NCBI RefSeq assembly: GCF_030028105.1
Contig: NC_092379.1
Span: 45,618,150 to 45,682,149, forward strand
Length of the DNA: 64,000 nt
Direction of reading: 5' to 3'
DNA from: Mobula birostris
Taxonomy: Eukaryota
Positions 11,165 through 64,000 of this stretch are shown piece by piece. The notes under the pieces are model-generated. The model ran no database searches. It was not told where the DNA came from and saw only the letters and a program-made list of their open reading frames with translations. The position numbers and the translations under genes are program-made. The number at the start of each line of letters is the position of its first letter. Position 1 is the stretch's first letter.

Positions 11165-14083
11165 CTAACCTGCACACGGACCATATCCCTCCATACACCT
11201 CCCGTCCTTGTATCTGTCCAATTTATTCTTAAATGTTAAAAAAGAACTCACATTTACCACTTCGCCTGGCAGCTCATTCCATACTCTCACCACTGTCTGT
11301 GTGAAGAAGCTCCCCCCAATGTTCCCTTTAAACTTTTCCCCCCTCACCCTTAACCCATGTCCTCTGGTTTTTTTTCTCCCCTTGCCTCAGTGGAAAAAGC
11401 CTGCTTGCATTCACTCTATCTATACCCATCATAATTTTATATACCGCTATCAAATCTCCCCTCATTCTTCTACGCTCCAGGGAATAAAGTCCTAACCTAT
11501 TCAACCTTTCTCTGTAACTGAGTTTCTCAAGTCCCAGCAACATCCTTGTAAACCTTCTCTGCACTCTTTCAACCTTACTTATATCCTTCCTGTAATTTGG
11601 TGACCAAAAGTGAACACAATACTCCAGATTCGGCCTCACCAATGCCTTATACAACCTCACCATAACATTCCAGCTCTTATACTCAATACTTTGATTCATA
11701 AAGGCAAATGTACCAAAAGCTCTCTTTATGACCCTATCTACCTGTGACGCCACTTTCAGGGAATTTTGTATCTGTATTCCCAGATCCCTCTGTTCTACTG
11801 CACTCCTTAGTGCCTTACCATTAACCCTGTATGTTCTACCTTGGTTTGTCCTTCCAACGTGCAATACCTCACACTTGTCAGTATTAAGCTCCATCTGCCA
11901 TTTTTCAGCCCATTTTTCCAGCTGGTCCAAGTCCTTCTGCAGGCTCTGAAAACCTTCCTCACTGTCTACTACACCTCTAATCTTTGTATCATCAGCAAAT
12001 TTGCTGATCCCATTTACCGCATTATCATCCAGATCATTGATATCGATGACAAATAACAATGGACCCAGCACTGATCCCTGTGGCACACCACTAGTCACAG
12101 GCCTCCACTCGGAGAAGCAATTCTCTACTACCACTCTTTGGCTTCTTCCATTGAGCCAATGTCTTATCCAATTTACCACCTCTCCATTTATACCTAGCGA
12201 ATGAATATTCCTAACTAACCTCCCAAGTGTGACCTTGTCAAAGGCCTTACTGAAGTCCATGTAGACAATATCCACTGCCTTCCCTTCATCTACTTTCCTG
12301 GTAACCTCCTGGAAAAACTCCAATAGATTGTTCAAACATGACCTACTGCGCACAAAGCCATGTTGACTCTCCCTAATAAGTCCCTGTCTATTCAAATGCT
12401 TGTAGATTCTGTCTCTTAGTACTCCCTCTAATAACTTACCTACAATCGACGTCAAACTTACTGGCCTATAATTTCCTGGATTACTTTTTGATCCTTTTTT
12501 AAAGAAAGGAACATCATGAGCCACTCTCCAATCCTCCGGCACCTCACCTGTAGACAGCGACATTTTAAATATTTCTGCCAGGGCCCCTGAAATTTCACAC
12601 TAGTCTCCTTCAAGTTCCGAGGGAACAACCTGTCAGGTCCCGGGGATTTATCCACTTTAATTTTCCTCAAGACAGCAAGCACCTCCTCCTTTTCAATCTG
12701 TACAGTTTCCATGACATCACGACTTGTTTCCCCTAATTCCACAGACTTTATGCCAGTTTCCTTAGTAAATACAGACACAAAAAAACTATTTAAGATCTCC
12801 CCCATTTCCTTTGTTTCCGCACATAGCCGACCACTTTGATCTTCAAGAGGACCAATTTTATCCCTTACAATCCTTTTGCTCTTAATATACCTGTAAAAGC
12901 TCTTTGCATTATCCTTCACTTTGACTGCCAAGGCAACCTCATGTCTTCTTTTAGCCCTCCTGATTACTCTCTTGTGTATTTTCTTGCACTTCTTATACTC
13001 CTCAAGCACCTTATTTACTCCCTGTTTCCTATACATGTCATACAACTTGCTCTTCTTCTTTATCAGAGTTGCAATGTCCCTTGAGAGCCAAGTTTCCTTA
13101 TTCCTATTCACTTTGCCTTTAATCCTGACAGGAACATACAAACTCTGTACTCTCAAAATTTCTCCTTTGAAGGCTTCCCACCTATCGATCACACCTTTGC
13201 CAGAGAACAACCTGTCCCAATCCACGCTTTTTAGATCCTTTCTCATTTCTTCAAATTTGGCCTTCTTCCAGTTCAGAACTCCAACCCGAGGACCAGATCT
13301 ATCCTTGTCCATGATCAAGTTGAAACTAATGGTGTTATGATCACTGGAACCAAAGTGCTCCCCTACACAGACTTCCGTCACTTGTCCTAACTCGTTTCCT
13401 AACAGGAGATCCAATATTGCACCCCCTCTAGTTGGTCCCTCTATATATTGATTTAGAAAACTTTCCTGAACACATTTGACAAACTCTAAACCATCTAGAC
13501 CCCCAACAGTATGGGAGTCCCAATCAATATATGGAATATTAAAATCCCCTACCACCACAACTTTATGTTTCCTGCAGTTGCCTGCTATATCTCTGCAGAT
13601 TTACTCTTCCAATTCTTGTTAACTATTGGGTGGTCTGTAATACAATGCCACTAATGTGGCCATACCTTTCCTGTTTCTCAGCTCCACCCATAAGGACTCA
13701 GTAGACAAGCCCTCTAATCTGTCCTGCCTGAGCACTGCTGTAATATTTTCCCTAACAAGCAATGCTACTCCCCCACCTTTCATTCCTCTGCCTCGATCAC
13801 ATCTGAAACATCGGAACCCTGGAATGTTAAGCTGCCAGTCCTGCCCCTCCTGTAGCCAAGTTTCATTAATTGCTATAACGTCATAATTTCACGTGTCAAT
13901 CCATGCCCTCAACTCATCCGCCTTCCCCGCAATACTCCTAGCATTGAAATATATACACCTCAGAAGATTTTTACAACCACTCACAACCTTTCTATTAGTG
14001 GATTTGCTTGAACTTTTAACATCATTTATTTTCGCCCCAGCCACACTGTCAGCTCTGGCACTCTGGTTCCCATCACCCTGCAA
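11165..14083 (-). pseudogene. CR1 ORF2 (endonuclease-RT) broken into several reading-frame pieces
   Basis: YFNARSI, VVGDFN, GSSDHN, NYRPVSLTS, YMDFSKAFDKV, GVPQGSVLGP, FADDTK. Confidence 0.9.
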
Positions 14084-14085
14084 AT

Positions 14086-15048
14086 CTAGTTTAAAGCCTC
14101 CCTAATAGCACTAACAAACCTCCCTGAAAGGATATTTGTCCCTTTGTAGCTCAAGTGTAACCTGTCTCTCTTGTACAGGTCCCATCTGCCCCAGAAGAGG
14201 TCCCAATGATCCTGAAATCTGAAACCCTGCCCCCTACACCAGTTCCTCAGCCACTTGTTCGTCCTCCAGCGCATCCTATTCTTACCCTCACTGGCACGTA
14301 GCACAGGTAGCAATCCTGAGATTACCACCGTCGAGGTCCTGCTTTTCAACTTCCTACCAAACTCTCTATACTCACTCTCCAGGACCTCCTCACTCTTCCT
14401 TGCTATGTCATTGGTACCGATGTGCATCACGACATCAGGCTGATCACCCTTCCACTTCAGAATGTCATGCAAGTGATCAGAGACATCCTTGACCCTGGCA
14501 CCCGGGAGGCAACAAGCCATCCTGGATTCTCTGTCACAACCACAGAACCTCCTATCTGCACCTCTAACTATCCAGTCCCCTATCAATACCGCTCTCCTCT
14601 TTTCCCACCCTCCCTTCTGCACTGCAGAGCCAGACTCAGTGCTAGAGATCCGGCTACTGCAGCCTGTCCCAGGTAAGTCATCCCCCGCAACAGTATCCAA
14701 TGCGGTATACTTGTTGTTGAGGGGAATGGCCACAGGGGAACCCTGCTCTACCTGCCCTTTCCTCTTCCCTCGCCTGACAGTGACCCAGTTTCCTGTCCTC
14801 TGCTCCTTTGGCGTAACTACCTCCCTGTAGCTACTATCTATAATCTCCTCATTCTCCCGAATGATCCGCAGGTCATCCAGCTCCTGCTCCAGTTCCCTAA
14901 CGCGGTTTGTTAGGAGCTGCAGCTGGATGCAATTCTTGCAGGCGTCATTGTCAGGGACACTGGAGGGCTCCCTGACTTCCCACATCCTGCAAGAGGAACA
15001 TTCCAACATCCTGCCTGGCATTCTCTCTGCTCTAAATAATCTGAACAA
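14086..15048 (-). CDS. CR1 ORF1 protein: N-terminal CxxC, coiled-coil, SGNH/GDSL esterase-like domain
   Basis: ECSSCRMW...CKNC, LTNRVRELEQELDDLR, LIGDWIVRG (GDS motif altered to GDW), HIGTNDI, DRLHL. Confidence 0.88.
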   Translation of the reverse strand: MFRLFRAERMPGRMLECSSCRMWEVREPSSVPDNDACKNCIQLQLLTNRVRELEQELDDLRIIRENEEIIDSSYREVVTPKEQRTGNWVTVRRGKRKGQVEQGSPVAIPLNNKYTALDTVAGDDLPGTGCSSRISSTESGSAVQKGGWEKRRAVLIGDWIVRGADRRFCGCDRESRMACCLPGARVKDVSDHLHDILKWKGDQPDVVMHIGTNDIARKSEEVLESEYREFGRKLKSRTSTVVISGLLPVLRASEGKNRMRWRTNKWLRNWCRGQGFRFQDHWDLFWGRWDLYKRDRLHLSYKGTNILSGRFVSAIREALN

Positions 15049-45650: not shown

Positions 45651-46080
45651 CTTGCCCGTATTGCTGTCAAATCCTGCTGCCGGACCAAGACCGGAGCCTT
45701 GTTGTGTCTAGATAAGGTAATGTATTTCGTTGTTTGGAACTGTCGCTTTGTATCCTCGCCTTCGCTAGGTAAGTCCGGCCGTTTGCCACTACCTTGAGTT
45801 CGGAACTGTCTCTGTGTTCACTCCTTCGCTAGGTAGGTCTGGCCGTTTGTCTCTGCCTTGTGTTGAGAATCGCCTCTTTGTGCCCTCCCCTCGCTGGGTA
45901 GGTCCAGCAGTATGCCGCTACCTTGAGTGGATATCTGTCTCTCAGTGTTCTGTGTATGAGTCCCGGCCCTACGTTCTGCTCCCTAGGAGGGGTGCTGATT
46001 CTGTGTAGAGCCCCGGCCCCAAGTCCTGTTCCCAAGGAGGGGCCCCGACTCTGTGCTCCATGTTTCTGTTCTCCCAAGAC

Positions 46081-46896
46081 CAAGTCCCTGTGTTCCAGTT
46101 CTGCCAAGACCAAGACCCTGTGTTCCAGTTCTGCCAAGACCAAGACCCTGTGTTCCAGTTCTGCCAAGACCAAGACCCTGTGTTCCAGTTCTGCCAAGAC
46201 CAAGACCCTGTGTTCCAGTTCTGCCAAGACCAAGACCCTGTGTTCCAGTTCTGCCAAGACCAAGACCCTGTGTTCCAGTTCTGCCAAGACCAAGTCTCTG
46301 TGTTCCAGTTCTGCCAAGACCAAGTCTCTGTGTTCCAGTTCTGCCAAGACCAAGTCTCTGTGTTCCAGTTCTGCCAAGACCAAGTCTCTGTGTTCCAGTT
46401 CTGCCAAGACCAAGTCTCTGTGTTCCAGTTCTGCCAAGACCAAGTCTCTGTGTTCCAGTTCTGCCAAGACCAAGTCTCTGTGTTCCAGTTCTGCCAAGAC
46501 CAAGTCTCTGTGTTCCAGTTCTGCCAAGACCAAGTCTCTGTGTTCCAGTTCTGCCAAGACCAAGTCTCTGTGTTCCAGTTCTGCCAAGACCAAGTCTCTG
46601 TGTTCCAGTTCTGCCAAGACCAAGTCTCTGTGTTCCAGTTCTGCCAAGACCAAGTCTCTGTGTTCCAGTTCTGCCAAGACCAAGTCTCTGTGTTCCAGTT
46701 CTGCCAAGACCAAGTCTCTGTGTTCCAGTTCTGCCAAGACCAAGTCTCTGTGTTCCAGTTCTGCCAAGACCAAGTCTCTGTGTTCCAGTTCTGCCAAGAC
46801 CAAGTCTCTGTGTTCCAGTTCTGCCAAGACCAAGTCTCTGTGTTCCAGTTCTCTCAAGACCAAGTCTCTGTGTTCCAGTTCTCTCAAGACCAAGTC
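46081..46896. repeat. 30-bp minisatellite, 27 full units (caagtctctgtgttccagttctgccaagac)
   Basis: Counted directly: 1 tcc unit, 6 acc units, 18 tct units, 2 terminal ctctc units. Confidence 0.97.
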
Positions 46897-48610: not shown

Positions 48611-50250
48611 TGAATAAAGGACCAACATTCCTCCCCCACGCCCCCGGCACCCAACAGCATCTTCCCTCAGGGTGTGAGAATAATGAATACCCAACCAACA
48701 CCTATGTATCGTCTCTAGGACAGCGTACTGCTTACTGTACTGTTTACTATTTATCTGTGCTCTGCATTACTACATACATTTATAATTATAATTTGCTAAC
48801 TTATTTATAGTATACTTTGGTGTTTTGTATGTGTGTGATATATGTTGTGTAGATGCAACGTCGTCCGGAGGAACGTTGTTTCGTTTGGTTGTCTATATGT
48901 GCACTCAAATGACAAGAAACGAACTTCAAGTTGAACTTGTACAAATATGTTGGTCATGGCGCCAGCAATCACCGTTCTCGCCTTTCTCTAGAATACTTCA
49001 ATAGGCCCTGCAAACACTTCAAGACGAATGATTTTAAAGATATTCCTAATCTCAAAATGTCCTGGCAAATTAGCATGCTCCACTCTGGTCTCACTACCCT
49101 CTAATTCTCTCCCCTTGGTAAAACATATGCAAAGTACACCTTAGGACTGAACGCTCATAATCGCTCTCCAAAAGCATGCTTCCTACTTTATCCATGAATG
49201 GTTCTATCCTCCACCGAGTAATCTTTGTTTCTTAATGTATGTATCCGACTTGCCAAAATATGGCTCGTTCTCTCGTTCTCTCGTTCTCTCCCCCCACCTC
49301 TCTCTCTCTCTCTCTCTCTCACTCGCTCTTCTAATTTTCTTATTCAATTCTTTTCTGTCTTATTTATATTTTTTCAGTATCACTGTTCGATTTTATCTCC
49401 CTAAACCTTAAGCATGCTTTCTTTATCTTCTTGACGAAATTTGCCACGTATGCCGCTATCCACTCTTCCCAAGAAGTTATATATTCCATTAAAATTATGT
49501 ATTTTATGCATATCGGCTACCCTCAGAAGTTAATCATTTATCATATTCACTGCCCATCTTCTCCCTTTGACATCCTTATGGAATGTCGTCCGTAGTTTGC
49601 CATGTTGTTCGAATTTGACAAATCCCTACACAATGAACAATCTGATAGAATCTTCGTCCCTAAATCCATCTCCTTTCTGTCTTCGGATCAGAAATAACTC
49701 CGATTACTACCCTAAATTAGGCAGATCTGAGTTTTTTCATCTCAATGCTTTCTGTCTGGTCGAGTTCCTCCAGTATCTTGTGTGTTGCTTCGTTACTATC
49801 CACGCACATTGCAGGCGAAGTCACTAAACCACAATTGATAATAAATTTCGGCTCAGATTTTGTTACTAGGGCTGGCATCAGATTCATGTTGACTACCATT
49901 GGTGAATAGAGGAAGCAAATTAGAGAGACAAGGATGTGCTCAGTTTGTCTGCATCAATAGGAATAATCTTTAGTTATTCGTGGTGATGAACTGAATTGGT
50001 TTAGAGTATTTCCTGTGTCATAATGAACATTAGACTTTTAACGTCTACTTGCGAAGCTCTCTCCATATAACAGAGCAAAGAGAAATACATTCAGTGCGAT
50101 GGAAGGAAGCAATGAAGATCTTTCTCTAAATTTCTATCCATACATTCAAGTTAATGCGTCATATATTTTACCGATGTAATTATCGGATACGGTATAATGC
50201 ATATCATTATCCAAGCTATAATCGTAGTAAATGTGCAGTCATTCTGCATT

Positions 50251-50285
50251 ATGCAAATGAGGCCAGACTCTCGAGGCTTATAAAG
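50251..50285 (+). promoter_or_regulatory. IgNAR promoter: octamer ATGCAAAT (50251-50258) and TATA-like TTATAAAG (50278-50285)
   Basis: Exact Ig octamer about 20 bp upstream of a TATA-like box and about 120 bp upstream of the leader ATG. Confidence 0.8.
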
Positions 50286-50374
50286 TCTTTGCTTCTCCAC
50301 AAGGTTTCACAGACAGCCTGCGCTGATGTCTGGAACCTTCTCTGTTTAGCAGGCTTTCAGGTCGTGAAGGAACG

Positions 50375-50417
50375 ATGAATATTTTATGTGTTTCGATATT
50401 TTTAACCTGGTTGCCGA
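50375..50417 (+). CDS. IgNAR: IgNAR leader (signal peptide) exon: MNILCVSIFLTWLP
   Basis: Hydrophobic peptide resembling known IgNAR leaders (MNIF...WLP); phase-1 donor GTAAGT at 50418; 111-nt intron to ccttcAG at 50528. Confidence 0.92.
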
Positions 50418-50528
50418 GTAAGTGCAGTTAAGTTTTAAAGAGAATAATGGTTACTATATTGCCGTTGCGTTGTTAAATCCTGTGCTGCTTCAGATATGCG
50501 ATGATTAAGTATGTTTTCCTCCCTTCAG

Positions 50529-50800
50529 ATGCCTTCAGTGTATCGGTAGAACAGACACCAAGAGAAGCAACAAAACAACCAGGCGAAACTCTGACCATCA
50601 ACTGTGTTTTAAGAGATGCTTACTGTGGCCTGTATGACACATCATGGTTCATCCAACGACCGGGTCGATCGGATTGGGAGAGGCTATCTATTGGAGGACG
50701 ATATACGGAATCAGTCAACAAGCCAACGAAGTCCTTTTCCCTGCAAATCAGAAACCTAATCGCTGAAGACACGGCCACGTATTTTTGCAAAGCTAAAGAC
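50529..50800 (+). CDS. IgNAR: IgNAR variable segment (VNAR), germline, open frame, type II-like (extra Cys in CDR1)
   Basis: NAFS-VSVEQTPREATKQPGETLTINCVLRDAYCGLYDTSWF...SFSLQIRNLIAEDTATYFCKAKD; short FR2-CDR2 region (CDR2 deleted) characteristic of VNAR. Confidence 0.97.
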
Positions 50801-50838
50801 CACAGTAACGAAGCTGAGCACACGCCAATTCAAAAAGT
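50801..50838 (+). other. V 3' RSS: CACAGTA - 22 bp - TCAAAAAGT (23-type)
   Basis: Counted directly. Confidence 0.93.
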
Positions 50839-51033
50839 TTGAAAATCTTTCACGCGAGAATCTCTGACTGCTTCGCCCTTATGGAAAATAAAATTACTGA
50901 GCAGCAGTTGATTCCGCTGTAGAGCGAGCGTACATTAGTACTAAGTTGGCGACAGTCACAATGCCGCTTATATCCAAGTGGACGCAGTTGGAGGTGCAGC
51001 GTCAGTATTCTCCCAGAGTTATGTAAATGGAGA

Positions 51034-51114
51034 CCTTATTGCTATTGAATCAACCACTGTGCCAGTATATACTGTCACAGTGATCCAAAACACGGACTCT
51101 GCAATTCAAAAACC
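51034..51114 (+). other. IgNAR: D1 (51062-51075, CCAGTATATACTGT) with 5' 12-RSS (CCTTATTGC-12-CACTGTG) and 3' 23-RSS (CACAGTG-23-TCAAAAACC)
   Basis: Both heptamers consensus; spacers counted; 5' nonamer weak (5/9). Confidence 0.93.
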
Positions 51115-51312
51115 ACCAATGCATTTGGTAATTGGAGAAAAGTCAATGTTAACCCGCTCATGAACTGTACAATGCAGATATACAATGTATAAAACCGTAC
51201 ACTATTTTCGAAGGATTATTGGTTATAAAATAAGTTGTATAGAATAATGCGAAATTAAGCTAGAGTGTAATTTGCGCCGTGACCTCGGTTTCTTGTATTA
51301 ATGTAGAAGGAA

Positions 51313-51392
51313 CCTTTCAGTACTAGTATCAATGACTGTGTGGATGGGTGTTGTCACAGTGATGAATCTTCAGTCCCGGTCATGCATAAATC
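51313..51392 (+). other. IgNAR: D2 (51341-51354, TGGATGGGTGTTGT) with 5' 12-RSS (CCTTTCAGT-12-GACTGTG) and 3' 22/23-RSS (CACAGTG-22-GCATAAATC)
   Basis: Flanking heptamers; spacers counted; both nonamers degenerate. Confidence 0.88.
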
Positions 51393-51704
51393 GTCTCGGC
51401 GGTTATTAATGCAAAATTAATGCAAGGTATTCCTTTAGGGACTAAAACTGCTTTCATACAAACATTCTTTATCTCTGCCAGAGAATGGTATACAAAGCGC
51501 AGCCTTGCTCTATATGTTTGTGTAATTGCAGTACATATGTGATCATCATATTAATAACAACGTCTTGATATTATCTACCTGGCTGAGAGCTATTATCGAC
51601 GGGATTTAAACAGACCAGTGCAACGATTTCATTCATGACCCCTACCGTCGTATCATGGACGTATGGGATTATCTGACGGATTTATGCGCCATTTCCAACA
51701 AGGA

Positions 51705-51772
51705 GGTTATTGTACTCATGTGAACTGATGTGCCAGTACTGTGCCACAGTAGTCTAAGCCATAGCGCAAACC
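51705..51772 (+). other. IgNAR: D3 (51733-51744, CCAGTACTGTGC) with 5' 12-RSS (GGTTATTGT-12-TGATGTG) and 3' 12-RSS (CACAGTA-12-GCGCAAACC)
   Basis: Spacers counted; a 12/12 arrangement is what the 12/23 rule requires to link 23-type upstream segments to the 23-type J. Confidence 0.85.
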
Positions 51773-52074
51773 TCCGAGACAGTTTTATTTTTTAAGCTCA
51801 TCTATTTGTAAAAGGGATTACAAAATATGCCTTTACGTGCATGGATGTTACTCAACATAGTTTTTCATACAATTTTACTTCTCCTTTAGGTTGAATTCTA
51901 CTTACAGTCCCTGATACTCAAACAGCGAAATTCCAGTTTTATTATCACATGCGTTTACAGTGCACTGAATAAATACAAGGGCAAGTGAAACTGAAGGAAA
52001 TGGAATATATTGGTCAACACTTTGTTCCTGTATTATTGTGGAAAGCCTCCGTCTACATTTCAGCTATAATGCTT

Positions 52075-52160
52075 ACTTTTTGAATTGCGCTGAATAGGAA
52101 GTTAATCATTGTGTTGTAATTACTATGACGGAGCTGGCACAAAGCTGATTGTGTTACCTG
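52075..52160 (+). CDS. IgNAR: IgNAR J segment (52114-52160, CNYYDGAGTKLIVLP) with 5' 23-RSS (ACTTTTTGA-23-CATTGTG)
   Basis: YYDGAGT motif typical of IgNAR J; phase-1 donor GTAAGT at 52161. Confidence 0.95.
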
Positions 52161-54019
52161 GTAAGTAACATTTTTTAAAATTACATTTTGAGAAAGCACG
52201 TACTTTTCCCCGAGGTGAAGTATAAATATATTCTCGTTTAAATGATGCAAACTGAAAAAGGCAATAGGATAATGTTATTTTGGAGTATAAGCATTTCATT
52301 AGAAACACGTTTATTGACTAAGAACCCCAAAAGAATTGAAGTACACGCCTCTATCCTCCCAAGATAATACTTTCGCTCGTTTTAAAAAAAAAAAAAAACG
52401 AAAATTGAACTTGGAGTATTTTTACGAATTGAAGCGCACAAATTCCCCTCGACCTGCTGCACCCTACCCCGGTCCGACGGTTACTTTAAAGTATTACCTG
52501 CTGTATTGATATAAGTGCCATGTCTTCATATCTTGGCATATTTGCGTGTTGATTTACTCTGCAATGGTCGTAGACCCAAGCAGAAAGAACTTTGAAGATG
52601 AAATAGGTTTCCGTTCAGAAAGGGATCAATAGATTAATAACTTGATACTTCGAGGGGTTGTTAAAACATATACTCGTTGCGAAAAAACTTGTCATTTAGC
52701 TGGAATAGAAGAGAAAATGTCCTCTATTTAGAAACGCATAACAGGCTTTAACAAATCTATACATCTGGAAGACCAGGATTAAACATATTTTTACGTTGTC
52801 AGAATCGTTGGACTCTATAACTTTGGTTATATTTTAGTGTCAATCGTCAGGATGTTCAGGGAGGGCAGAAGTAGGCGAAAGGTCTGTGCGCAAGGCCAGA
52901 ATAGATACTGAATGAATTTCAACATAATTAATGTCGTCTTTGAAAGCAGGGCACAATAGTATCAAGACTCTAACTTCTCGCTGAATACTTTTGTCAATTG
53001 CCACGGTGCTACATGTAATTAAAAATTACACTCCAGATCTAAGTGAATGACATTCTAAATGTGTTAGTGTCGCTCAAGACACCAATTATAAAGGTGTACA
53101 GTGTTAAACAGACTGTGTTGTGGTACAAACGATAAAACTGTCGTCATTGAAGCAGTCTGCTAAAATATAGGTTGCAGTGGAAACATTGCTGAGAAACGGG
53201 TTTTACTTTTCATCAGTCAATTGAATGAGAGCATTTACAAGTAGTTCCTCCCCAAAACAAACACAAATGAAAGCAAACCTCTGACACTACTATGGGACCC
53301 ACAAATGTCAGGGAAGCAATTTGAAAAAAAAATCTATCATTCGTCCAGTTTACTTGACCTTATTGCTGATTGCTTGCTTCATCTTTCCTAATTTTAAACA
53401 TGCTGTGAAGCTCATTTGTCCGAGCTTAGTCGTGTTTAGAAGTCCGCTGAGTTTCGTTGTTTATGGAGTTTTGTGGGAACCCAGTACAATTCCCGTGTTT
53501 TTTTTTGTTAAATAGGCAAGTAAACAAATCGTCTTTGTTCGTATACAGCGCTGTGGTGTATTACTCCGTCTGCCCGGCCCGATGCAGTCCTTGCCCTTGG
53601 TTTTTGATCCTATTGGGGAAGGAACTTCTCATACATCAGGCACAACCCATTCCATGCACTTAACTGAGAAACTGGGAAGGAATCGGCATTTGAGAAGAGT
53701 ACCAGAGGGTGAATGTATTAAATACGTAGAAACACCAACAACACCCCTTCTATTTTTCAATGGAATGGAACCTGTTTCTCAGTCCAATAAAGTGTATTGG
53801 ACTGTTCTTTCACTTCACTGTCCTCAGTCTTATTATAAGCTCTGTATCTCCCCTCCTTCTGTAATATGCGATTACCTTTTGCTTTGCATGTCCGCAAGGA
53901 TCTTTGCTTTAAAAGGTATTCCAATTTTCTCATTCTGCATTTGAATAATTTCAATATTTGGAATACATTGTGAAAGAAAAGAAATCTTTACCTAATCTCT
54001 GCCCTAAACGGGGAATCCC

Positions 54020-54400
54020 ATATTTATGCTCCATTTTCCTCCCACATCCGAAACACGTTCAGTTGGTTAGCTAATTGGCAAATGAATATTGTCCACAGTG
54101 CTTAGAACAACGATAGAATTTGGTGGGATTGATGTTGGTCTGGGGACGAATAAACCAAAATGAATTAATGTAGGATTATTGCAACTCAATTATGTAACCC
54201 TAGCCTAATCATAGGACGATTTGCTAACCGTTATGACTTTGGACTATAGAGTTAAATGACAGTACGTGGGAATCCCACACGGTCATGGGGAGAACAAGCA
54301 CGCTACTTAGAGAAGGCATCAGAATTGAACTTTGTACGCTGAAACTTCGAGTTGTGACGGTGTTGCGCTAACGGCTAAGCTACTGTGGGTCTTGCACTTC
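54020..54400. mobile_element. SINE-like fragments in the J-C1 intron
   Basis: Similar to the SINE-like copies at 61.6-62.5 kb (aaccctagcctaatc...cccacacggtcatggggagaac). Confidence 0.5.
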
Positions 54401-54659
54401 TCCATAACTCTTATTAAGTATCCATGTTGCCTTAGTCCATATCATTGAGACTTATTATAAATATTCTGAACCCAAACACCTATCCTTGTCATTCTAGTGA
54501 GCAGTTAGCATTGCCCTATTACAATGTCAGCCATATTCCAAAGATGTCTGCTATGGTTTAGTGAATGTGGGCATGCGCTGGAAACGTAGCGACAATTACG
54601 GGCAGTCCAGCACCTTCCTGACTAAATGGATTTGACGCAAACTACTCATTTCATGAGTT

Positions 54660-55810
54660 TGCTTCAGTTTCATTCCATAAAGCCATAAGACCATAAGAGA
54701 TAGGAACAGAATTAGGCCATTTGGCCCATCGCGTCTGCTCCGCCATTTCATCATGACTGATCCAATTTTCCTCTCCTACCCAATCTCCTGTCCTCTCCCC
54801 ATACCTCTTCGTATCCTGACCAATCAACAATCTATCAACCTCAGCTGTAAATATACATAAACACCTGGTCTCCACAGCTTCATGTGGCAAAGAATTCCAC
54901 AGATTCACCACTCTTTGTCTAAAGAAATTCCTCCTCATATCCATTCTAAAATGGCGCCTGTCTCCTTTGAGGTTGTGTCCTCTGGTCGTAGACTCTCCCA
55001 CTATAGGAAAAATGCTCCCCAGATCCACTCTATCAAGGCCGTTCGCCATTCGGTATGTTTCAATAAGGTCACGCCTCATTCTTCTGAATTCCAGCGAATA
55101 CTGGCCCAGAACTATTAAACACTCTTTATGCGAGAAGCCAATAAATCCTGGAATCATTTTCGTCAGCCTCCTATGAACCTTCTCCAGTTTCAACACATCC
55201 TTTCGAAGATACGGGGCTCAGAACTGCTCACAATACTCCATCTGAGGGCTCAACAATATTTTATAAAGTTTCAGGATTACATCCTTGTTTTATATTCTAG
55301 CCCCCTAGACATGAATGCTAACATTGCATTTTCTTCCTTCAACCTTGAAATTAATCTTTAGGGAATCCTAAACAGGCACTTCCAAGTCACTTGGCGCCAA
55401 CATTTCTCCCCATTTATTTCTTCTATCAAGGTGTATGACCATGCACTTCTCGACACTGTGTTCTAACTGCCATTTATTTTTCTGCCGATTCTCCAAATAT
55501 ATCAAGGGCCGCTCTGTGGCCTTTCTATTTCCTCAAAACTACCTGCCCCTCTACCTATCTTCTTATCATCTGCAAACATTTCAACAATCCTATCAATTAC
55601 ATCATTCAAATCATTGACATATAACGTACAAAAGAATCGGTCCCAACACAGATCCCTGTGGAACACCACTAGTCACCGGCAGCCAACCAGAAAAGGCTCG
55701 CTTTGCTTCCTGCTAAGCGGCCACTGCTTCCATGCTAGAATTTACCTGCAGTTCCATGGGCTCGTAGCATATTCAGCAGACTCATGTGTGCCACCTCGTC
55801 AAAGGCCTTC
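54660..55810 (-). mobile_element. CR1 3' fragment in the J-C1 intron
   Basis: LEKVHRRLTKMIPG...RRMRRDLIETY...NLWNSLP plus 3' UTR. Confidence 0.87.
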
Positions 55811-56199
55811 TGAAAATTCAAGTACATAACATCAATCCGTCATCGAACCGGGCACTGCAAATTGTCTCCCGGAGTGTAAAAATGGATCCTTAATTGGTTG
55901 GGTGGACTCGGAGATTTAAAGTGGCATTATGATCAATGTTATCTGTTGCCAGCTCTATCTCAGCTCTGTCAACTTGCCATTGTTGATTTCCACATTCAGT
56001 GCGCCTCAACAATCATCAACAGCAACTTGCAGTTTGAGAAAAATAGAAACGTGCTGAGGTTGAAAGATAACTTTTGTCCCGTTCAGGTAAACCTAGTCGA
56101 AAATTGTGCAGACTATAAAATACAATATTCTGTAATATGGACAGACTGGTGACGTTTCAGATGCGATTACCATTTAACAAGCCTATATTACTCATGTTT

Positions 56200-57100
56200 T
56201 TGCTGCGACTAATACATATCATCATCATTATCATCATCAAATTTCAACGTACGTATACGTCATCATACACAACCCTGAAATTAATTTTCTTGCGGACATT
56301 CACAGCAAATACCACGAAACACAACAGAATCAACGAAAGCCCACGCACATTAAGACGGACAACCAAAGGGCAAAAGACAAACTGTGTAAATCAAACAGAA
56401 AAAAAACAAATAAAATAAATAAACAATAAATATCATAAACATGAGATGAACATTTTTTAAAAACTGAGACCATATGTTCTGGGAACAGTTCAATGTCAGG
56501 GGGAACGAAATTGAGTAATGTATTCCTTCTGTTGAAGAACCTGATGTTGAAGGTGTAATATTTGTTTCAGAACCAATTAGTTTGGGTACCCAGGCTTTTG
56601 TACCTCTTTCCTGATGGCGGCAGCGAGAAGAGAGCGTGGCCGGAAACCTAAGGGTACTTGAAGATAAATGCTGTAATCCTGCGACAGCGCAGCGTATAGA
56701 TGCTCTTAATGGCGGGGAAGGTTGCATTCGTCATGAACTGTGCTGTATTCACGACCACTTTTTGTAGACTGTCCGTTCAGGGCATTGATATTTCCATATC
56801 AGACCTTAATGCAACCAGTCAGTATACACTCCACCGCACATCTACCTAAGTTTGTCAAAGTTTTCGATGACATACGGGATCTTTTCAAACTTTTAAGAGA
56901 GTAGTGCTTTCTTTCTAAGTGCACTTACCAGCTGGACTCTGGATAGATCCTCTGAAATGATTACGCAGAGGAATCTGTAGTTGCTAACTCTCTCCACCTC
57001 TGACAACTATATGAGGACCTGCAGATGGACCCGCGGTTTTCTCCTCCTGTAGTCAATAATCAACTCCTTGGTCTTGCTGACTTTGAGTGAGAGATGTTAT
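56200..57100 (-). mobile_element. Rex1/Babar-type 3' fragment in the J-C1 intron
   Basis: Nucleotide similarity to the 2.9-3.9 kb copy (cctttcctgatggcggcagcgagaagagagc, ggtcttgctgactttgagtgagag). Confidence 0.7.
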
Positions 57101-57422
57101 TCTGACAGTTAGATTTTCAATCTCTCTCCTCTAGTTGATTTGTACGGCTAACAACAGTTTTGATACGACGAAGAGTAATCAGGCGAAATTTCAAAGTACC
57201 ATTCAAGGTATATAAAAAAAAATCACCATAAGCTGTGATACCATTATGTTGAAGGAAATATCTCGGCTTCAGTCATCCCTTCAGCCAAAAGGTAGCTCTT
57301 GACATGTAGAGATTCCTATGATGCAAAGAATATTGTAGCTGTCTTATGCCTTACAGGTTGTCAGAAGAACAACGTAAAATTGATCCAATCATCTCAAAGA
57401 CTTTTGTTTTTGTTAATTTTAG

Positions 57423-57743
57423 CACAACAACCGTCCCCACCAAACATCAATCTTGTCTATTCTGCAACTGCCGAACAAAAAGCACAAGGTTTTGTGGAAT
57501 TGATTTGTCTCATGAGCGAATACCTACCTGAAAACATCGCAGTGACCTGGCAGAAAAACGGACAAGCCGTACAGTCCGGCTTTACCACCACTTCTTCCAC
57601 TGAAAGTTCAAGCGAAACGTTTACCTCAGCAAGTGTTCTCAAAGTGCCTGTAAACGAATGGGCCAGTGGTGCTGTGTACTCGTGCCAAGTATCCCACTCT
57701 GCAACCAGCAGCAACATCCGCAAAGAAATACGAGCTGAGTCAG
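57423..57743 (+). CDS. IgNAR: IgNAR constant domain C1 exon (321 nt)
   Basis: Acceptor ttttAG, donor GTAAGA, phase 1/1; PSPPNINLVYSATAEQKAQGFVELICLMSEYLPENIAVTW...VYSCQVSHSATSSNIRKEIR matches recalled IgNAR C1. Confidence 0.95.
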
Positions 57744-58761
57744 GTAAGAAGCAGTTCCCAGTCCATAGGTGCAGTATTTCCACTTTCGTCCTCAGTATTT
57801 CATTTAGTGGGCTGTAATCATCTACGGACAAGATTTTAAAATAACTAGACTACTAAAGTTCATCATCAAGTTGGGATAAGGGACAGATAAGAGTGTGATT
57901 CGGAATGTTTAGGCAGCAAACATCAAATATCAGAGGTAAGAATTGCAAGGAAATCTTGCGAAGTATAGTCAGAAGACGTCAGGGCACATCACCGAATATT
58001 GATTTCTGATGATGTTAATGCATCTAATAGAATTTGGATATCTGAAATGGTTCTAAGGAATCCGGACATCTTAAAAGATAAGTACAGGAAAGGGGCGGTA
58101 AAAAAAAAAAAAAAAATCTTCCGTGATCGCCTTTAACTTTCTATTTTAACAGCACATTAATTTTCACTGGTGTGTTATATCTGTAGCTGGTATCAGCATG
58201 CAATAGTGAAAGTTTTGGAAAATAAATAAATGAAAGGAAGAAAGTAGTCGAGGCAGCCACTCGACTTATCAGACAGTTAAACCTCGTGGTAAACTGGTCC
58301 TTCATTCTTGCATAAATAGATCGAACATTGCATATGTATTTAGCACTTCTTTCCATCTAACGTTCACTTACATCTTCTAGCTTTCTGTGTTCTGTCCTCC
58401 TTCAGTCAATCTCTCTGTCTCGCTGCATCCCATTGACCGTTCTGCAACAAGCCACTGCCCCTTCCCCACGCCGGTGTTTCATCACTGTCGTACTTTCCGG
58501 GGATGTCCGGCTGTATCTCTCCCTCTATCCTTCGCCACACTTATTTATGAATGACGATATGTTATTCATTTTCAACCATTTCCTTTCTTTTCAATATAGA
58601 AGAGTAGCATCTGACTCACGGGGTCCCGAAAAGACGACTTACGCATGATTAAAAATGAACAAATTCCACTTTAAGCTCTTAACGTGTAGCAGGTTATTAT
58701 TAAATTGAAATCTTTTCTAAACTTCAGATTCCTCATGAGTCCTATCAATTATCTCTTCTAG

Positions 58762-59064
58762 AATTCGCATTATTTCTCAGAGATCCTACCGTTGAAGAAA
58801 TATGGATAAACAAAACCGCCACACTGGTGTGTGAAGTGATCGCCACAACTCCAGCTGAGGTTTCCATCTCTTGGACAGTGGATGGAAAGGAAAGGGCTGA
58901 TGGCGTTCAAACAGAACAAGCAGCAAAGATCGGGAGTCAGTACGTGACAGTCGGCCGTTTGACCAGCAGCGTGGCCGAGTGGGACAGCGGGGTAGAATAC
59001 TCCTGCTCGGTGCAGGACAATCAATCAGCTGCTCCCCAATCAAAAAGGACACGAAACGCAAAAG
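58762..59064 (+). CDS. IgNAR: IgNAR constant domain C2 exon (303 nt)
   Basis: Acceptor cttctAG, donor GTGGGT, phase 1/1; EFALFLRDPTVEEIWINKTATLVCEV...SWTVDG...EWDSGVEYSCS. Confidence 0.94.
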
Positions 59065-60786
59065 GTGGGTGCAATAACAACAATCGAAATGCAAAGCAGT
59101 GTAGGTGCAGAAAGAAGAACAAAAACTGCTGGATACCGGGCAGCAGTATTCAGAGGAAAACAGGCATGATGGTGAACGGGTTGCCCTCTGCTAGAGTCAT
59201 AATGCATTATCTTATTCAAGGGAAGACAGGTTTTCTGACAAGTGGTACACCGATAGCGTTCCACCCAAGATTTCGTCGCATGATTTGTTGAAGTCATAGG
59301 ACCCGACAGCATTGGAACAGACCCTTCGGTCGACAGAAACCAAGCCCGCTTCAGCACTCATTCAGCGAATTCCACTTTGGTCTATTTTATTGTTTCATAG
59401 CTTCAACAACTCTTTGCAGATTCTACTCTATATTAAGAGTAGGTTTTGGTGGTCGACGTGGCTAGCACTGGCATGATGTTCGATATGGAAATCGGAGAAC
59501 TTAAAACAAAACTCTCACCGGTATAAATCGTATAAACTCCAGTAGAGCAGGTGATGATCGAAATCAAAGTTTCTGGAGACTTGCAGCAGGCATTCTAATA
59601 GTTGTATCCTTGTACTACCCCTCTAAAAAGTTGTAGTCATAAAACACTGCACAGAAATACAGTTGGCCCTCCGACCCCAATGTTCAAAGATGTTTCACGT
59701 CTACCTCAATCCAATTTTCAGCAACAGAAAAAGAAATTCTTTCAATGTCTTTCCTATTTCAGTGAACGACTAAATGTTTGCCAAATGCATTGACGTTAAG
59801 GTACCCTTTAAAGCTCCTTCCACTCAACTTAAACACATACTCTGTTTGGATTTCATAGTCTACACATACGAATGCTGTTGTCTACTTAGTTTACCCGCGT
59901 TGCTGATAATTTTGCGTGGCGTTATCGGGTCACTACTCGGTTTCTTTCACTCCAGAAAATAACAAGCCCAACGATTCTAATTACTCCCCATAACTGACGT
60001 TCTCCAATCCAGTTAACATACGGTTAAATCTCTTATGCATTCTTTCCAGCGCAATGCCATTCACCTTACAACGAGGCGACTAGACATTACAAAATCGAGT
60101 ACACTAGTGTTTAGTAAAGTTGAAACAGAGCGACCTAAATTTCATATGCTAATCCTAACCTGTGAAAGCAAGTATACCGTCTTCTTTTGTCAACCCACCA
60201 ACTACTGTTGCTGCCACTTTCAGGGAACTATGGACTTAAATCCATGTATCTCTCTGTTCATAAATATTCCTTAATAACGAGCAATTTTTTTCAATTCACG
60301 GGATACCCCCTTCTTCAGTTGCCAAACTGCATCGACACGCATTTGTCCATCTGCTGCCGCACAATCTAACATTGTATTTGATCAGTATTGAAGCAGCTTT
60401 GGGCACCCGTCATGACGATTCAAAACACCACCAAGTGTTGTCTTATGCATGAGCACAGAAATCTTATTTTCTATATGCACATACAAATTGTTATATCACA
60501 AACAACAAAGCTCTTAGGACAGTGGTTCGCGCTCGTGATACACTCCAAAACAGAAAGTTATCATCACCATTACCCTTAGCGGCTCACTAACAATAAGACC
60601 GCTCACCACGGAACGTTAAACAACTTGACCAGCGCATAGTTAGGAAACTTGCCAAATGCAAAAAGAGCCACTGTTTCCTTCATCGCAGGTACTACAATTC
60701 TTGCTGTGTATTTGCACCGTTTCGCTTCAACCACATTTCGGAAAAACAGTTTTTGGAGATTAACACTGGTTGACCTTCTCTTGCAG

Positions 60787-61104
60787 CCAAAGCAGTGGAA
60801 CCAAGGGTAGGCCTCATGCCCTCGTCTGCAGAGGAGATTCAGACTGCGGGTATCGTTACGCTCACATGCATGATAACGGGATTCTACCCCGATGACATAA
60901 CCGTTTTGTGGCAGAAGGACGGAGCCGCATTCTACGCTAACGCTACCAGCTTCCCCACTGCACTTCAACAGGATATGACCTTCAACACCAGAAGCCTCCT
61001 TTACTTGACTTCAGCCGATTGGAAGAAGGACGCAACATACTCCTGTGTCGTCACGCACCCACCTTCACAATCTACTGTGAAAGCAAACATCAGCACCTCG
61101 AAAA
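60787..61104 (+). CDS. IgNAR: IgNAR constant domain C3 exon (318 nt)
   Basis: Acceptor ctcttgcAG, donor GTAAGT, phase 1/1; EEIQTAGIVTLTCMITGFYPDDITVLWQKD...FPTALQQDMTFNTRSLL...YSCVVTHPPSQSTVK. Confidence 0.94.
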
Positions 61105-61619
61105 GTAAGTACAATTTGCCAAAAGGCTCACATCCATTCCGTGCTTTACATCCTAGTCAAGAGATAAAAATACAACAAAGCTCGGCAATGAGCAGATTGA
61201 AACGATCATTACTGTAGTACTGTATTAGTAATCAGACCTCTCCGACGGTCCGATACAATAACATATGTGAGTGTCAACTAAAATTAGTGTTATATAATCG
61301 GATCCCTGTTGAACCTGCGGAGACAAACTGAACTATGATGTGAAAATGCCTCACCAATACGATCTTAATAGGGCAAAGCTGGAAGAACGTGGAAAAATAT
61401 TATTTGATGAATGACACGGGAAACGGAGCCATTCTTGGCCGTTCTAATTATACTCTAAGATCATACACCAATCGACCACACTTGTAAACAAACTTATTTA
61501 AGGTCGAGTGCAATATGATCAATAGATAAGAATTAGCATACTAATAACTTGCAAGTGATAGAGTGGTGCTTTAGTGATGAATCTCCGACATGACCGGCGT
61601 GAATAATTGGTGAGAAACA

Positions 61620-61830
61620 TTCTCTGTAAGAAGTTGTACATTCTCCCGTGGAATACGTGGGTTTCCTCGTGGTACTCCGGTTTCCTTCCACAGTCTAATG
61701 ACGTACCGGGCAGTAGATTTGTTGTTCATTCTGAATTGTCCAGTGATTAGGCCAGGGTTATATCGGGTGTTGCTGGCGGTGCGGCCCGAATGGCCGGAAG
61801 GGCCTATTCTGCGTATATCTCAAAATCAGT
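61620..61830 (+). mobile_element. SINE-like fragment (V-SINE/HE1-like core)
   Basis: gtgggtttcctcgtggtactccggtttccttccacagtc resembles the conserved V-SINE core. Confidence 0.6.
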
Positions 61831-61840
61831 AAGTAATTAA

Positions 61841-61872
<32 letters not shown>

Positions 61873-61879
61873 GTAGATA
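61841..61879. repeat. (GATA)n microsatellite
   Basis: Read directly. Confidence 0.93.
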
Positions 61880-62184
61880 CATCTTCGATGGAACAGGAAA
61901 ATAGATATGCTTCTCGGTGTGGAGAGTGAATCCACATTTATGGCCAGTTTATTTTCATCTCGCATGGTGTTGATGATGCTCGGCCCTGATCTCACAACAG
62001 CGCACAATGCCATCCACGAATATCTACAAGGACTGTTCATTCCACGCTGTACGGAGTTCAGACCATAGCCGTTTTTACGGAAAAACTGACATGTAGTTGA
62101 CAGGAACATGCAAAGCAAAACTAGTTGCGTGAATCGTTTGGACAATTAGATCTTATTATACAGTGAAATACAATACATTTATTT

Positions 62185-62470
62185 AGCGATACAACGCGGA
62201 GTAGGCCATTCCAGCCGTTCGAGGCACAACGCCCCAGCAGCTGCACAACCCCGCTTAACCCTATCCTAATCCAAGACAATTTACAATGACTAATTAACCT
62301 ACCCAGTCGGTATTTTGACTGTGTTAGGAAAGCGGAGCATCCGGGAAAACCAATGCATTCCACCGGGAGGACTTACAGACCTCTTGCAGAATGGTACAGG
62401 CATTGAACTCCGAACTCCAGAACGCTCCGACCTGTAATAACGTCGCTCTGCCTCTGCGCTACCTTGGCGT
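62185..62470 (-). mobile_element. SINE-like element
   Basis: Reverse complement contains ggttttcccggatgctccgctttcctaacacagtc, the same core as above. Confidence 0.6.
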
Positions 62471-64000
62471 TGTGTTGTCGGTTGGCAATGGTTGGAGCCA
62501 TAAATTGCCCCAAAGGAAATGATGAAAATCATTGTACAGGCGCAATAACATCATCGTATTAGATTCTCAGGGCAGGTTTTAAATACCCTTTCGGAATTTC
62601 ATGAATGTTAACTTCTTCCCGTGATAATGGCAGATGGTTGCTTATGTATGCATATTGCTCAACTCAAATCACAACTCCTTATCAAATGAAGCTGTCCACG
62701 TATTGCTGCGGAAAGATCTATGTGGCAAGTGGAAGTGAAATTGCTATGACATTAGTTCCAGACAATATTTAAAAGAAACTGTAACAACCTGCGCTAGATA
62801 TTCAATGCATTACGTAAAAGAACATGCTGACAACTACGAACCCCAACATTCTTCAGTCTCCGACTATTTATAGAATACACTATCGTTCTATTCATTTGTC
62901 CTAAGTTAGTACCCTCACGTTTTCCACCAATTAGCTAAGTATTAGCAAATTATTTTCTTGTCCATATCCCACCAAATTTTCCAGGAATCCTTCTCAGAGA
63001 TCTCAGCTTGTTTTCCCAGCAAATATACATATTACAGTATATCCAACCGTAATATCATGGAAATAGATTAAGAGCAGCTGAGGCCCCAGTACCGGTCGCT
63101 GCTTTTACGACCGTAAACCCTTATTTCATTCGCTTCTGGTAAATGGTTGCTGTAAGGTTTAACATGTACAAAATAGACTGCTTTTATTCACCTGAGCTAC
63201 TCAGACAGTACTTCCCAAACACAAGATATCGTTATGACCAGGGGCGTCAAATACACGGGTAGTTTTCTTCTTCCATGCACACCACATCCTGACTTGGAAA
63301 TGCCGTATAGCGCCTTCACTTCAGTTTCGATGGGTTACATCCTGTACTACTCAAAATGAGTGCACATCACGCTACACCAGAAGCATTAAAATAGTTCAAG
63401 AAAGTAGCTCACATTCTCAAGGCTAAGCATGCCTGACAGGTAAATCATGAACTTGCCAGCTGCATCGAAACGACATTAAAATATTAAAACAAAAATACTA
63501 AAGGCCTGTACACATTTGAAAGTGAATTATTCTGCCAAATTTTTTACTGTATTTTAATAGCTCTGTTTAATTCTGTTTCTGGAATGCGTTGGGAAATAAA
63601 TATTGCAGTTGTCGGTTCATACATTGCAGTAGACTTCTGTAATTTTCAGGATCAATTATGCGGCAAGAGATCGCTGCGAATACATGGTTCTATTATATTT
63701 TGTGACACGTGGTAGCCTACAGAGACAGTGTTTCACTTTACTGCCAAGTTTTCCTATTTCTAGTGGAGTCGTTCCAACAAAATATGATGGAAGGTATTGA
63801 GGACATAGCAGTCAGTCCTGGGTTCATAAATTGTTGGTTGTATTGAATGCTAACCACACAGCAGCGCTCTCGTTAGAATTCCTTATTTTGAACAGCATTC
63901 TACTCCGTTCGTAATGGGAAAAAACAGTCAAACTTGGTAGTTTTTACTGAGTATAGCTCTACGCTTATTTACCCTATTCAGTCAATTTGTTTCGACATCA

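Follow-up and report, generated by a model that had tools for sequence, protein, structure and literature searches.

IgNAR is the light-chain-free antibody of sharks and rays, and a 64,000-nucleotide (nt) stretch of the Mobula birostris genome (contig NC_092379.1, positions 45,618,150 to 45,682,149; hereafter the window) very probably contains the first two-thirds, from the 5′ end, of an IgNAR heavy-chain gene that is functional, unrearranged and organised as a mini-cluster, the format seen in cartilaginous fish. Published IgNAR clusters consist of one V, three D, one J and five C segments, followed by secretory (Sec) and transmembrane (Tm) exons, and are present as several well-separated copies per genome, some of which are incomplete or have germline-joined D segments (PMC8692893; PMC4622739). 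In white-spotted bamboo shark, clusters IgNAR1-7 have the germline order V-3D-J-5C-Sec-Tm, with recombination signal sequence (RSS) spacers drawn as 12, 22 and 23 nt. Several of these clusters are well separated on one chromosome, some being incomplete or having germline-joined Ds, and they are expressed in lymphoid tissues (PMC8692893). The type II cluster in nurse shark (Ginglymostoma cirratum) likewise has a single V, three D segments, a single J and a single C-exon set, and undergoes four within-cluster joins (PMC4622739). Skates and rays, too, have previously been shown to possess IgNAR genes and to express VNARs (PMC12227049; PMC11817625). A skate IgNAR protein has been cited (ocellate spot skate WLO97390) and Atlantic stingray IgH clusters have been mapped near the alpha/delta locus of the T-cell receptor (TCR) (PMC12227049), while freshwater stingray VNAR libraries have been panned (PMC11817625).

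The Mobula cluster is like the nurse shark type II cluster in having single V and J segments, three Ds and a single C set, and in combining a cysteine in complementarity-determining region 1 (CDR1) with cysteines available from the D segments. Its C1, C2 and C3 domains are ~61–63% identical to the solved nurse-shark domains. In contrast, the V domain reaches merely ~65% identity to solved VNARs, framework 4 (GTKLIVLP) appears to differ from that of shark VNARs, J has an in-frame 5′ Cys codon, and the J-C1 intron, unlike its nurse-shark counterpart, extends over 5.3 kb and contains repeats. The germline order and the RSS spacer lengths are also like those of the bamboo shark clusters, from which the ray cluster differs in that all three Ds are unjoined, C1–C3 only fall within the window and the host is a batoid. 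This is a well-known kind of gene, and the cluster leaves knowledge of IgNAR genes unchanged. Judged from its sequence, it appears mildly distinctive in three respects: a 35% divergence of V from solved VNARs, a TCR-J-like framework 4 and a J-encoded Cys.

Every feature of the cluster is on the plus strand of the 64-kb window. The features are listed below, with each RSS scored as its matches to the heptamer (x/7) and nonamer (x/9) consensus.

50251-50258, plus strand: immunoglobulin (Ig) promoter octamer ATGCAAAT; RNA cover starts 3′ of it
50279-50285, plus strand: TATA box TATAAAG, 21 nt past the octamer
50375-50417, plus strand: leader (L) exon, MNILCVSIFLTWLP plus 1 nt, phase 1, GTAAGT donor, L-V splice confirmed in RNA
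50529-50800, plus strand: VNAR exon with type II pattern, VNAR and V-set matches, many RNA contigs on the exon
50801-50838, plus strand: V 3′ RSS, heptamer CACAGTA (6/7), spacer 22 (23 fits worse), nonamer TCAAAAAGT (6/9)
51034-51114, plus strand: D1 with its signals, coding part 51062-51075; 5′ 12-RSS (heptamer 7/7, spacer 12, nonamer 5/9) and 3′ 23-RSS (heptamer 7/7, spacer 23, nonamer 8/9)
51313-51392, plus strand: D2 with its signals, coding part 51341-51354; 5′ 12-RSS (heptamer 6/7, spacer 12, nonamer 5/9) and 3′ 22-RSS (heptamer 7/7, spacer 22, nonamer 6/9)
51705-51772, plus strand: D3 with its signals, coding part 51733-51744, with a 12-RSS on both sides; 5′ RSS (weak heptamer 4/7 that keeps the coding-proximal CAC, spacer 12, nonamer 8/9) and 3′ RSS (heptamer 6/7, spacer 12, nonamer 6/9)
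52075-52113, plus strand: J 5′ RSS, nonamer 6/9, spacer 23, heptamer CATTGTG (6/7)
52114-52160, plus strand: J segment, CNYYDGAGTKLIVLP plus 1 nt, phase 1, GTAAGT donor, J-C1 splice confirmed in RNA
57423-57743, plus strand: C1 exon, 321 nt, IgNAR 4Q97 match, C1-set, spliced to J in RNA
58762-59064, plus strand: C2 exon, 303 nt, best PDB match IgNAR 4Q9B
60787-61104, plus strand: C3 exon, 318 nt, IgNAR 4Q9C match, C1-set

The leader, V, J, C1, C2 and C3 are all open in reading, bounded by GT donors and AG acceptors, and in phase 1 throughout; the L-V intron measures 111 nt. The cluster copy of the octamer is one of just two on the plus strand of the window. Searches of the entire 64 kb by tblastn with V and C1–C3 revealed no other Ig exon, upstream of the cluster or elsewhere, and the window therefore contains no second cluster and no C4.

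The identity of the V exon and of the constant domains is evident from both Pfam and PDB comparisons. Pfam assigns the V exon to the V-set family (E 2e-10), and C1, C2 and C3 to the C1-set family (E 5e-21, 1e-13 and 1e-20, respectively). In a PDB search, the V exon (residues 5–88) gives gap-free alignments with residues 2–85 of solved VNARs, and V therefore has the short, CDR2-less length of a VNAR. Nearly all of the ~30 top matches are VNARs, headed by 7SPO chain C (E 3e-33) and 8HT3 (E 4e-33), both at ~64–65% identity. The best PDB matches of C1 and C2 are the nurse-shark IgNAR entries 4Q97 (E 2.7e-40, ~63% identity) and 4Q9B (E 7.7e-36, ~61% identity), which we take to be IgNAR C1 and C2, respectively; another IgNAR entry, 2MKL, scores far lower against C2 (E 6e-19). 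C3 matches nurse-shark IgNAR 4Q9C (E 9.3e-37), its best or best single-domain PDB match, and this entry is named as IgNAR C3 in PMC12227049. The order of the C exons thus mirrors that of the entries 4Q97, 4Q9B and 4Q9C. Together, C1–C3 contain six cysteines, all intradomain, and four N-X-S/T sites; such a cysteine count would fit a heavy chain that forms no bridge to a light chain.

The V exon encodes the canonical cysteine pair and one further cysteine in CDR1 (...DAYCGLY...), with no Cys in framework 2. Type II VNARs are defined by one non-canonical Cys in CDR1 that pairs with one in CDR3, and by frameworks 2 and 4 that lack Cys (PMC4622739). As read from the exon, the cysteine pattern of the Mobula V is that of a type II VNAR, in which a CDR1–CDR3 disulfide would be expected to form. 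In shark VNARs, framework 4 has the form GT(V/A)(L/V)TVN. In the frame that is spliced to C1, the Mobula J instead gives GAGTKLIVLP, preceded by the in-frame 5′ Cys codon TGT (52115-52117), and an untrimmed J could thereby contribute an extra Cys to the domain.

A preliminary description of this DNA, made from the letters alone, had proposed a germline, potentially functional V-D1-D2-D3-J-C cluster of IgNAR, and this proposal is borne out by the PDB identities, the RSS layout and the RNA contigs described below. The same description regarded the N-terminus of V as unusual, but an SV-QTP start is already found in the solved VNAR 7SPO chain C. Its further suggestion of an uncatalogued VNAR scaffold did not gain support, as V is ~64–65% identical to solved VNARs and has standard type II cysteines, and as skate and stingray IgNAR and VNARs are already in the literature (PMC12227049, PMC11817625). 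A search of the V exon against a large protein collection gave no match; the collection evidently holds few vertebrate Ig fragments of such length, which makes this result uninformative on novelty.

The RSS layout of the cluster is V-22/23, 12-D1-23, 12-D2-22, 12-D3-12 and 23-J. On the basis of these predicted signals, V-D1, D1-D2, D2-D3 and D3-J joins would all be permitted as 12/23-compatible. The arrangement agrees with the 12/23 layout given in the preliminary description, except that the spacers of the V and D2 3′ signals fit 22 nt better than the 23 nt stated there. When the window was scanned uniformly for RSS, the 50–52 kb bin gave 10 matches and the remaining 2-kb bins 0–3 each, apart from a tandem array at 46–47 kb. 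D1, D2 and D3 are each able to encode Cys in at least one frame, including a Cys in one frame of D1 and Cys-Cys in one frame of D2.

D1 and its two heptamers form a near-perfect 28-nt palindrome. Within the coding part of D3 lies a second heptamer, TACTGTG (51737-51743; 6/7), 23 nt from the D3 nonamer, so that a single nonamer serves two heptamers, one 12 nt away (weak, 4/7) and one 23 nt away (6/7). The 23-spaced heptamer was considered as a working signal and rejected, as it has no correctly oriented 12-RSS partner. D3 itself looks like a shortened duplicate of D1, and in view of this resemblance and the missing partner, TACTGTG is read as a probable relic.

Transcription was followed in four public runs (X1–X4), which come from one study of the same species, are stored as contigs and were aligned to 49800-53300. 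The runs contain 54–84% of the sampled words of 50300-52400. They are read as RNA because of their cover pattern, splice joints and size, and the exact removal of GT..AG introns argues against their being DNA. Depth is zero over 49800-50267 in all of X1–X4, and the earliest RNA contig begins at 50320, ~35 nt past the TATA box. The joint 50417 to 50529, with GT..AG ends, occurs in X1 and X3 and corresponds to exact removal of the L-V intron. Similarly, in 4/4 runs the letters that follow 52160 are CACAACAACCGTCCCCACC..., the start of C1 at 57423. Contigs with 0–4 differences span the unrearranged V-to-D1 region, and others span D1 to J and continue into C1; the germline cluster is therefore transcribed through and spliced from J.

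Downstream of J, X2–X4 contain 0.28–0.29 of the words of 57423-61104, a stretch whose exon share is 0.256. X1 contains 0.80 of the same words, presumably as pre-mRNA, and the genome-sized runs of the X3 sample contain 0.66–0.78. The C1-C2 and C2-C3 splices are predicted from consensus sites, reading phase and this exon-level word share. The intact frames and splice sites reported in the preliminary description hold up, given the open exons, their GT/AG bounds, the constant phase 1 and the exact L-V and J-C1 splices in RNA.

Rearranged transcripts are found in X4: its V-to-J joints, of five kinds, run from 50791-50797 in V to 52114-52126 in J. The joints have trimmed ends, and V is exited just ahead of its 3′ RSS. 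On both sides, each joint matches the V end and the J of this cluster at ≥95%. The single joint with a known insert has 33 nt between V and J, including the D3 core ACTGTGC. This fully read joint is in frame (...YFCKANPSFRTLCPLSGDGAGTKLIVLP) and has exactly one Cys in CDR3, matching the CDR1 Cys as in type II VNARs. These contigs, which are short and may include cross-mapped paralogues, support expression of the cluster in rearranged form, with V(D)J joined to C1 by splicing. The preliminary description had named a lack of rearranged or spliced transcripts as grounds for setting the cluster aside; L-V splices, J-C1 splices and V-to-J contigs were all found.

Three further observations were made on the same RNA data and on a related set. 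Contigs end at 51065 (X1, also X3 and X4) and start at 51083 (X1, X2 and X4), flanking D1 in the interval 51055-51083, and X2 has one contig that passes through D1; this pattern points to a variant or an allele, or else to partial joining, at D1. In one X4 contig (depth ~9), 30 letters resembling the end of a VH framework 3 (TATYYCATVD) abut the J-C1 intron at 52391. The join, within 52385-52400, lies just inside an A-run and is followed by 583 nt of intron (52391-52973) with 3 differences. The contig may be chimeric, or the clusters may truly have been joined in an aberrant or switch-like way. In a second species (organism B), genome-sized runs contain 0.22–0.23 of the words of the C1–C3 stretch. 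This is approximately the exon share and points to a close relative whose C exons are nearly identical.

Several observations weigh against a functional IgNAR gene at this locus. The runs are labelled "RNA? (a guess)", and their RNA nature is deduced. D2 and D3 have degenerate 5′ heptamers (6/7 and 4/7, respectively), although the coding-proximal bases are retained. Rearranged joints are listed in 1/4 runs (X4), the RNA contigs are short, with the shorter side of a joint covering 21–38 nt, and some contigs carry different leaders, attached to V at 50529 and 50545. From these last contigs it follows that paralogous clusters share V parts and could supply some of the V-to-J joints. The confinement of the joints to X4, their short sides and the shared V parts, together with unrearranged read-through contigs that are plentiful in all four runs, would fit a cluster transcribed only in unrearranged (sterile) form, with the V-to-J contigs derived from another IgNAR cluster, paralogous or allelic and nearly identical to it. 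This explanation is nevertheless improbable, as every joint agrees so closely on its two sides with the V end and the J of this cluster, as the segments, signals and frames of the cluster are all intact, and as the sole fully read joint is in frame. Moreover, in X1 and X4 the V exon has a far greater word depth than the V-D spacer, as expected if most V RNA is rearranged, with the caveat that contig depth is a poor measure.

The 3′ part of the gene raises a different alternative. The window stops 2.9 kb past C3, and tblastn with V and C1–C3 detects no further Ig exon in 61105-64000; the C4, C5, secretory tail and transmembrane exons fall outside it, and the integrity of the whole gene is beyond its scope. 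The preliminary description had called the cluster complete, which applies to the part from leader to C3, whereas C4, C5, the secretory tail and the transmembrane exon lie beyond the window. A decaying or truncated IgNAR copy, with an intact front and its back (C4 to the transmembrane exon) missing or broken, would yield no full antibody. Such a copy is very unlikely in the face of the consensus GTAAGT donor at the end of C3, from which C3 is not the last exon, the abundant and spliced transcripts, and the presence of C1–C3 exon words in the RNA runs. In addition, the membrane form in bamboo shark requires just V-C1-C2-C3 and Tm (PMC8692893). Least probable, to the point of being scarcely credible, is that the locus is not IgNAR at all, but either an IgW cluster whose V is NAR-like or, from a TCR delta locus, the V(D)J unit of NAR-TCR. 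IgNAR and IgW constant domains are related, a transfer of the NAR V(D)J between TCR delta and a cluster resembling IgW has been proposed (PMC12227049), and the PDB comparison of the C domains was made without an IgW structure as contrast. The J framework GTKLIVLP also looks TCR-J-like: in a PDB search with the J and C1-start peptide, the sole match is a TCR alpha J with a non-significant E of 1.6, used as a hint only. Against this, RNA splices J straight to a C1 exon that is ~63% identical to nurse-shark IgNAR C1, and the nurse-shark IgNAR matches of C2 and C3 are, in order, 4Q9B and 4Q9C. Furthermore, tblastn of the window with V and C1–C3 reveals neither a supporting TCR delta V exon nor a TCR C exon 3′ of J, as a NAR-TCR arrangement would have.

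As a functional IgNAR mini-cluster, the locus is proposed to operate as follows. In developing B cells, RAG would join V, D1, D2, D3 and J inside the cluster by four 12/23-compatible joins, whose order is presumed from the signals. These joins would create a long CDR3, in which a Cys supplied by a D segment could pair with the CDR1 Cys of the V exon to give a type II VNAR. Under the Ig octamer, the transcript begins ~35 nt past the TATA box. Splicing removes the L-V intron and attaches J to C1; it would then go on through C2 and C3 to exons past the window (C4, C5 and the secretory tail, or the transmembrane exon). The functional end product would be a heavy-chain-only homodimer.

A more specific proposal, rather doubtful at present, is that the cluster represents a batoid-specific VNAR germline family, marked by the TCR-J-like framework 4 (GTKLIVLP) and by a J that starts with an in-frame Cys codon. 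If so, framework 4 could retain a trace of the proposed NAR V(D)J transfer between TCR delta and a cluster resembling IgW, the J Cys could permit disulfide patterns beyond types I–IV, and the V domain would be a scaffold so far uncatalogued, with some use in the engineering of single-domain antibodies. Irrespective of this proposal, the cluster provides a mapped, transcribed germline V-D1-D2-D3-J reference for ray IgNAR. It can be used for germline assignment of repertoire reads, for the design of primers for batoid VNAR libraries, and for comparison of RSS and D-encoded cysteines between sharks and rays.

Elsewhere in the window, a long interspersed nuclear element (LINE) occupies the minus strand at 11328-15048, with a reverse transcriptase (11328-12563), part of an endonuclease (12458-13558) and a GDSL-esterase ORF1 (14086-15048). 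The upstream open reading frames were considered as parts of the cluster and rejected, as they are parts of this LINE. A tandem array at 46061-46896, within the GC-rich 42–48 kb region, comprises 28 copies of a 30-nt unit with 99% identity, and yields spurious long open reading frames on both strands as well as spurious RSS-like matches.

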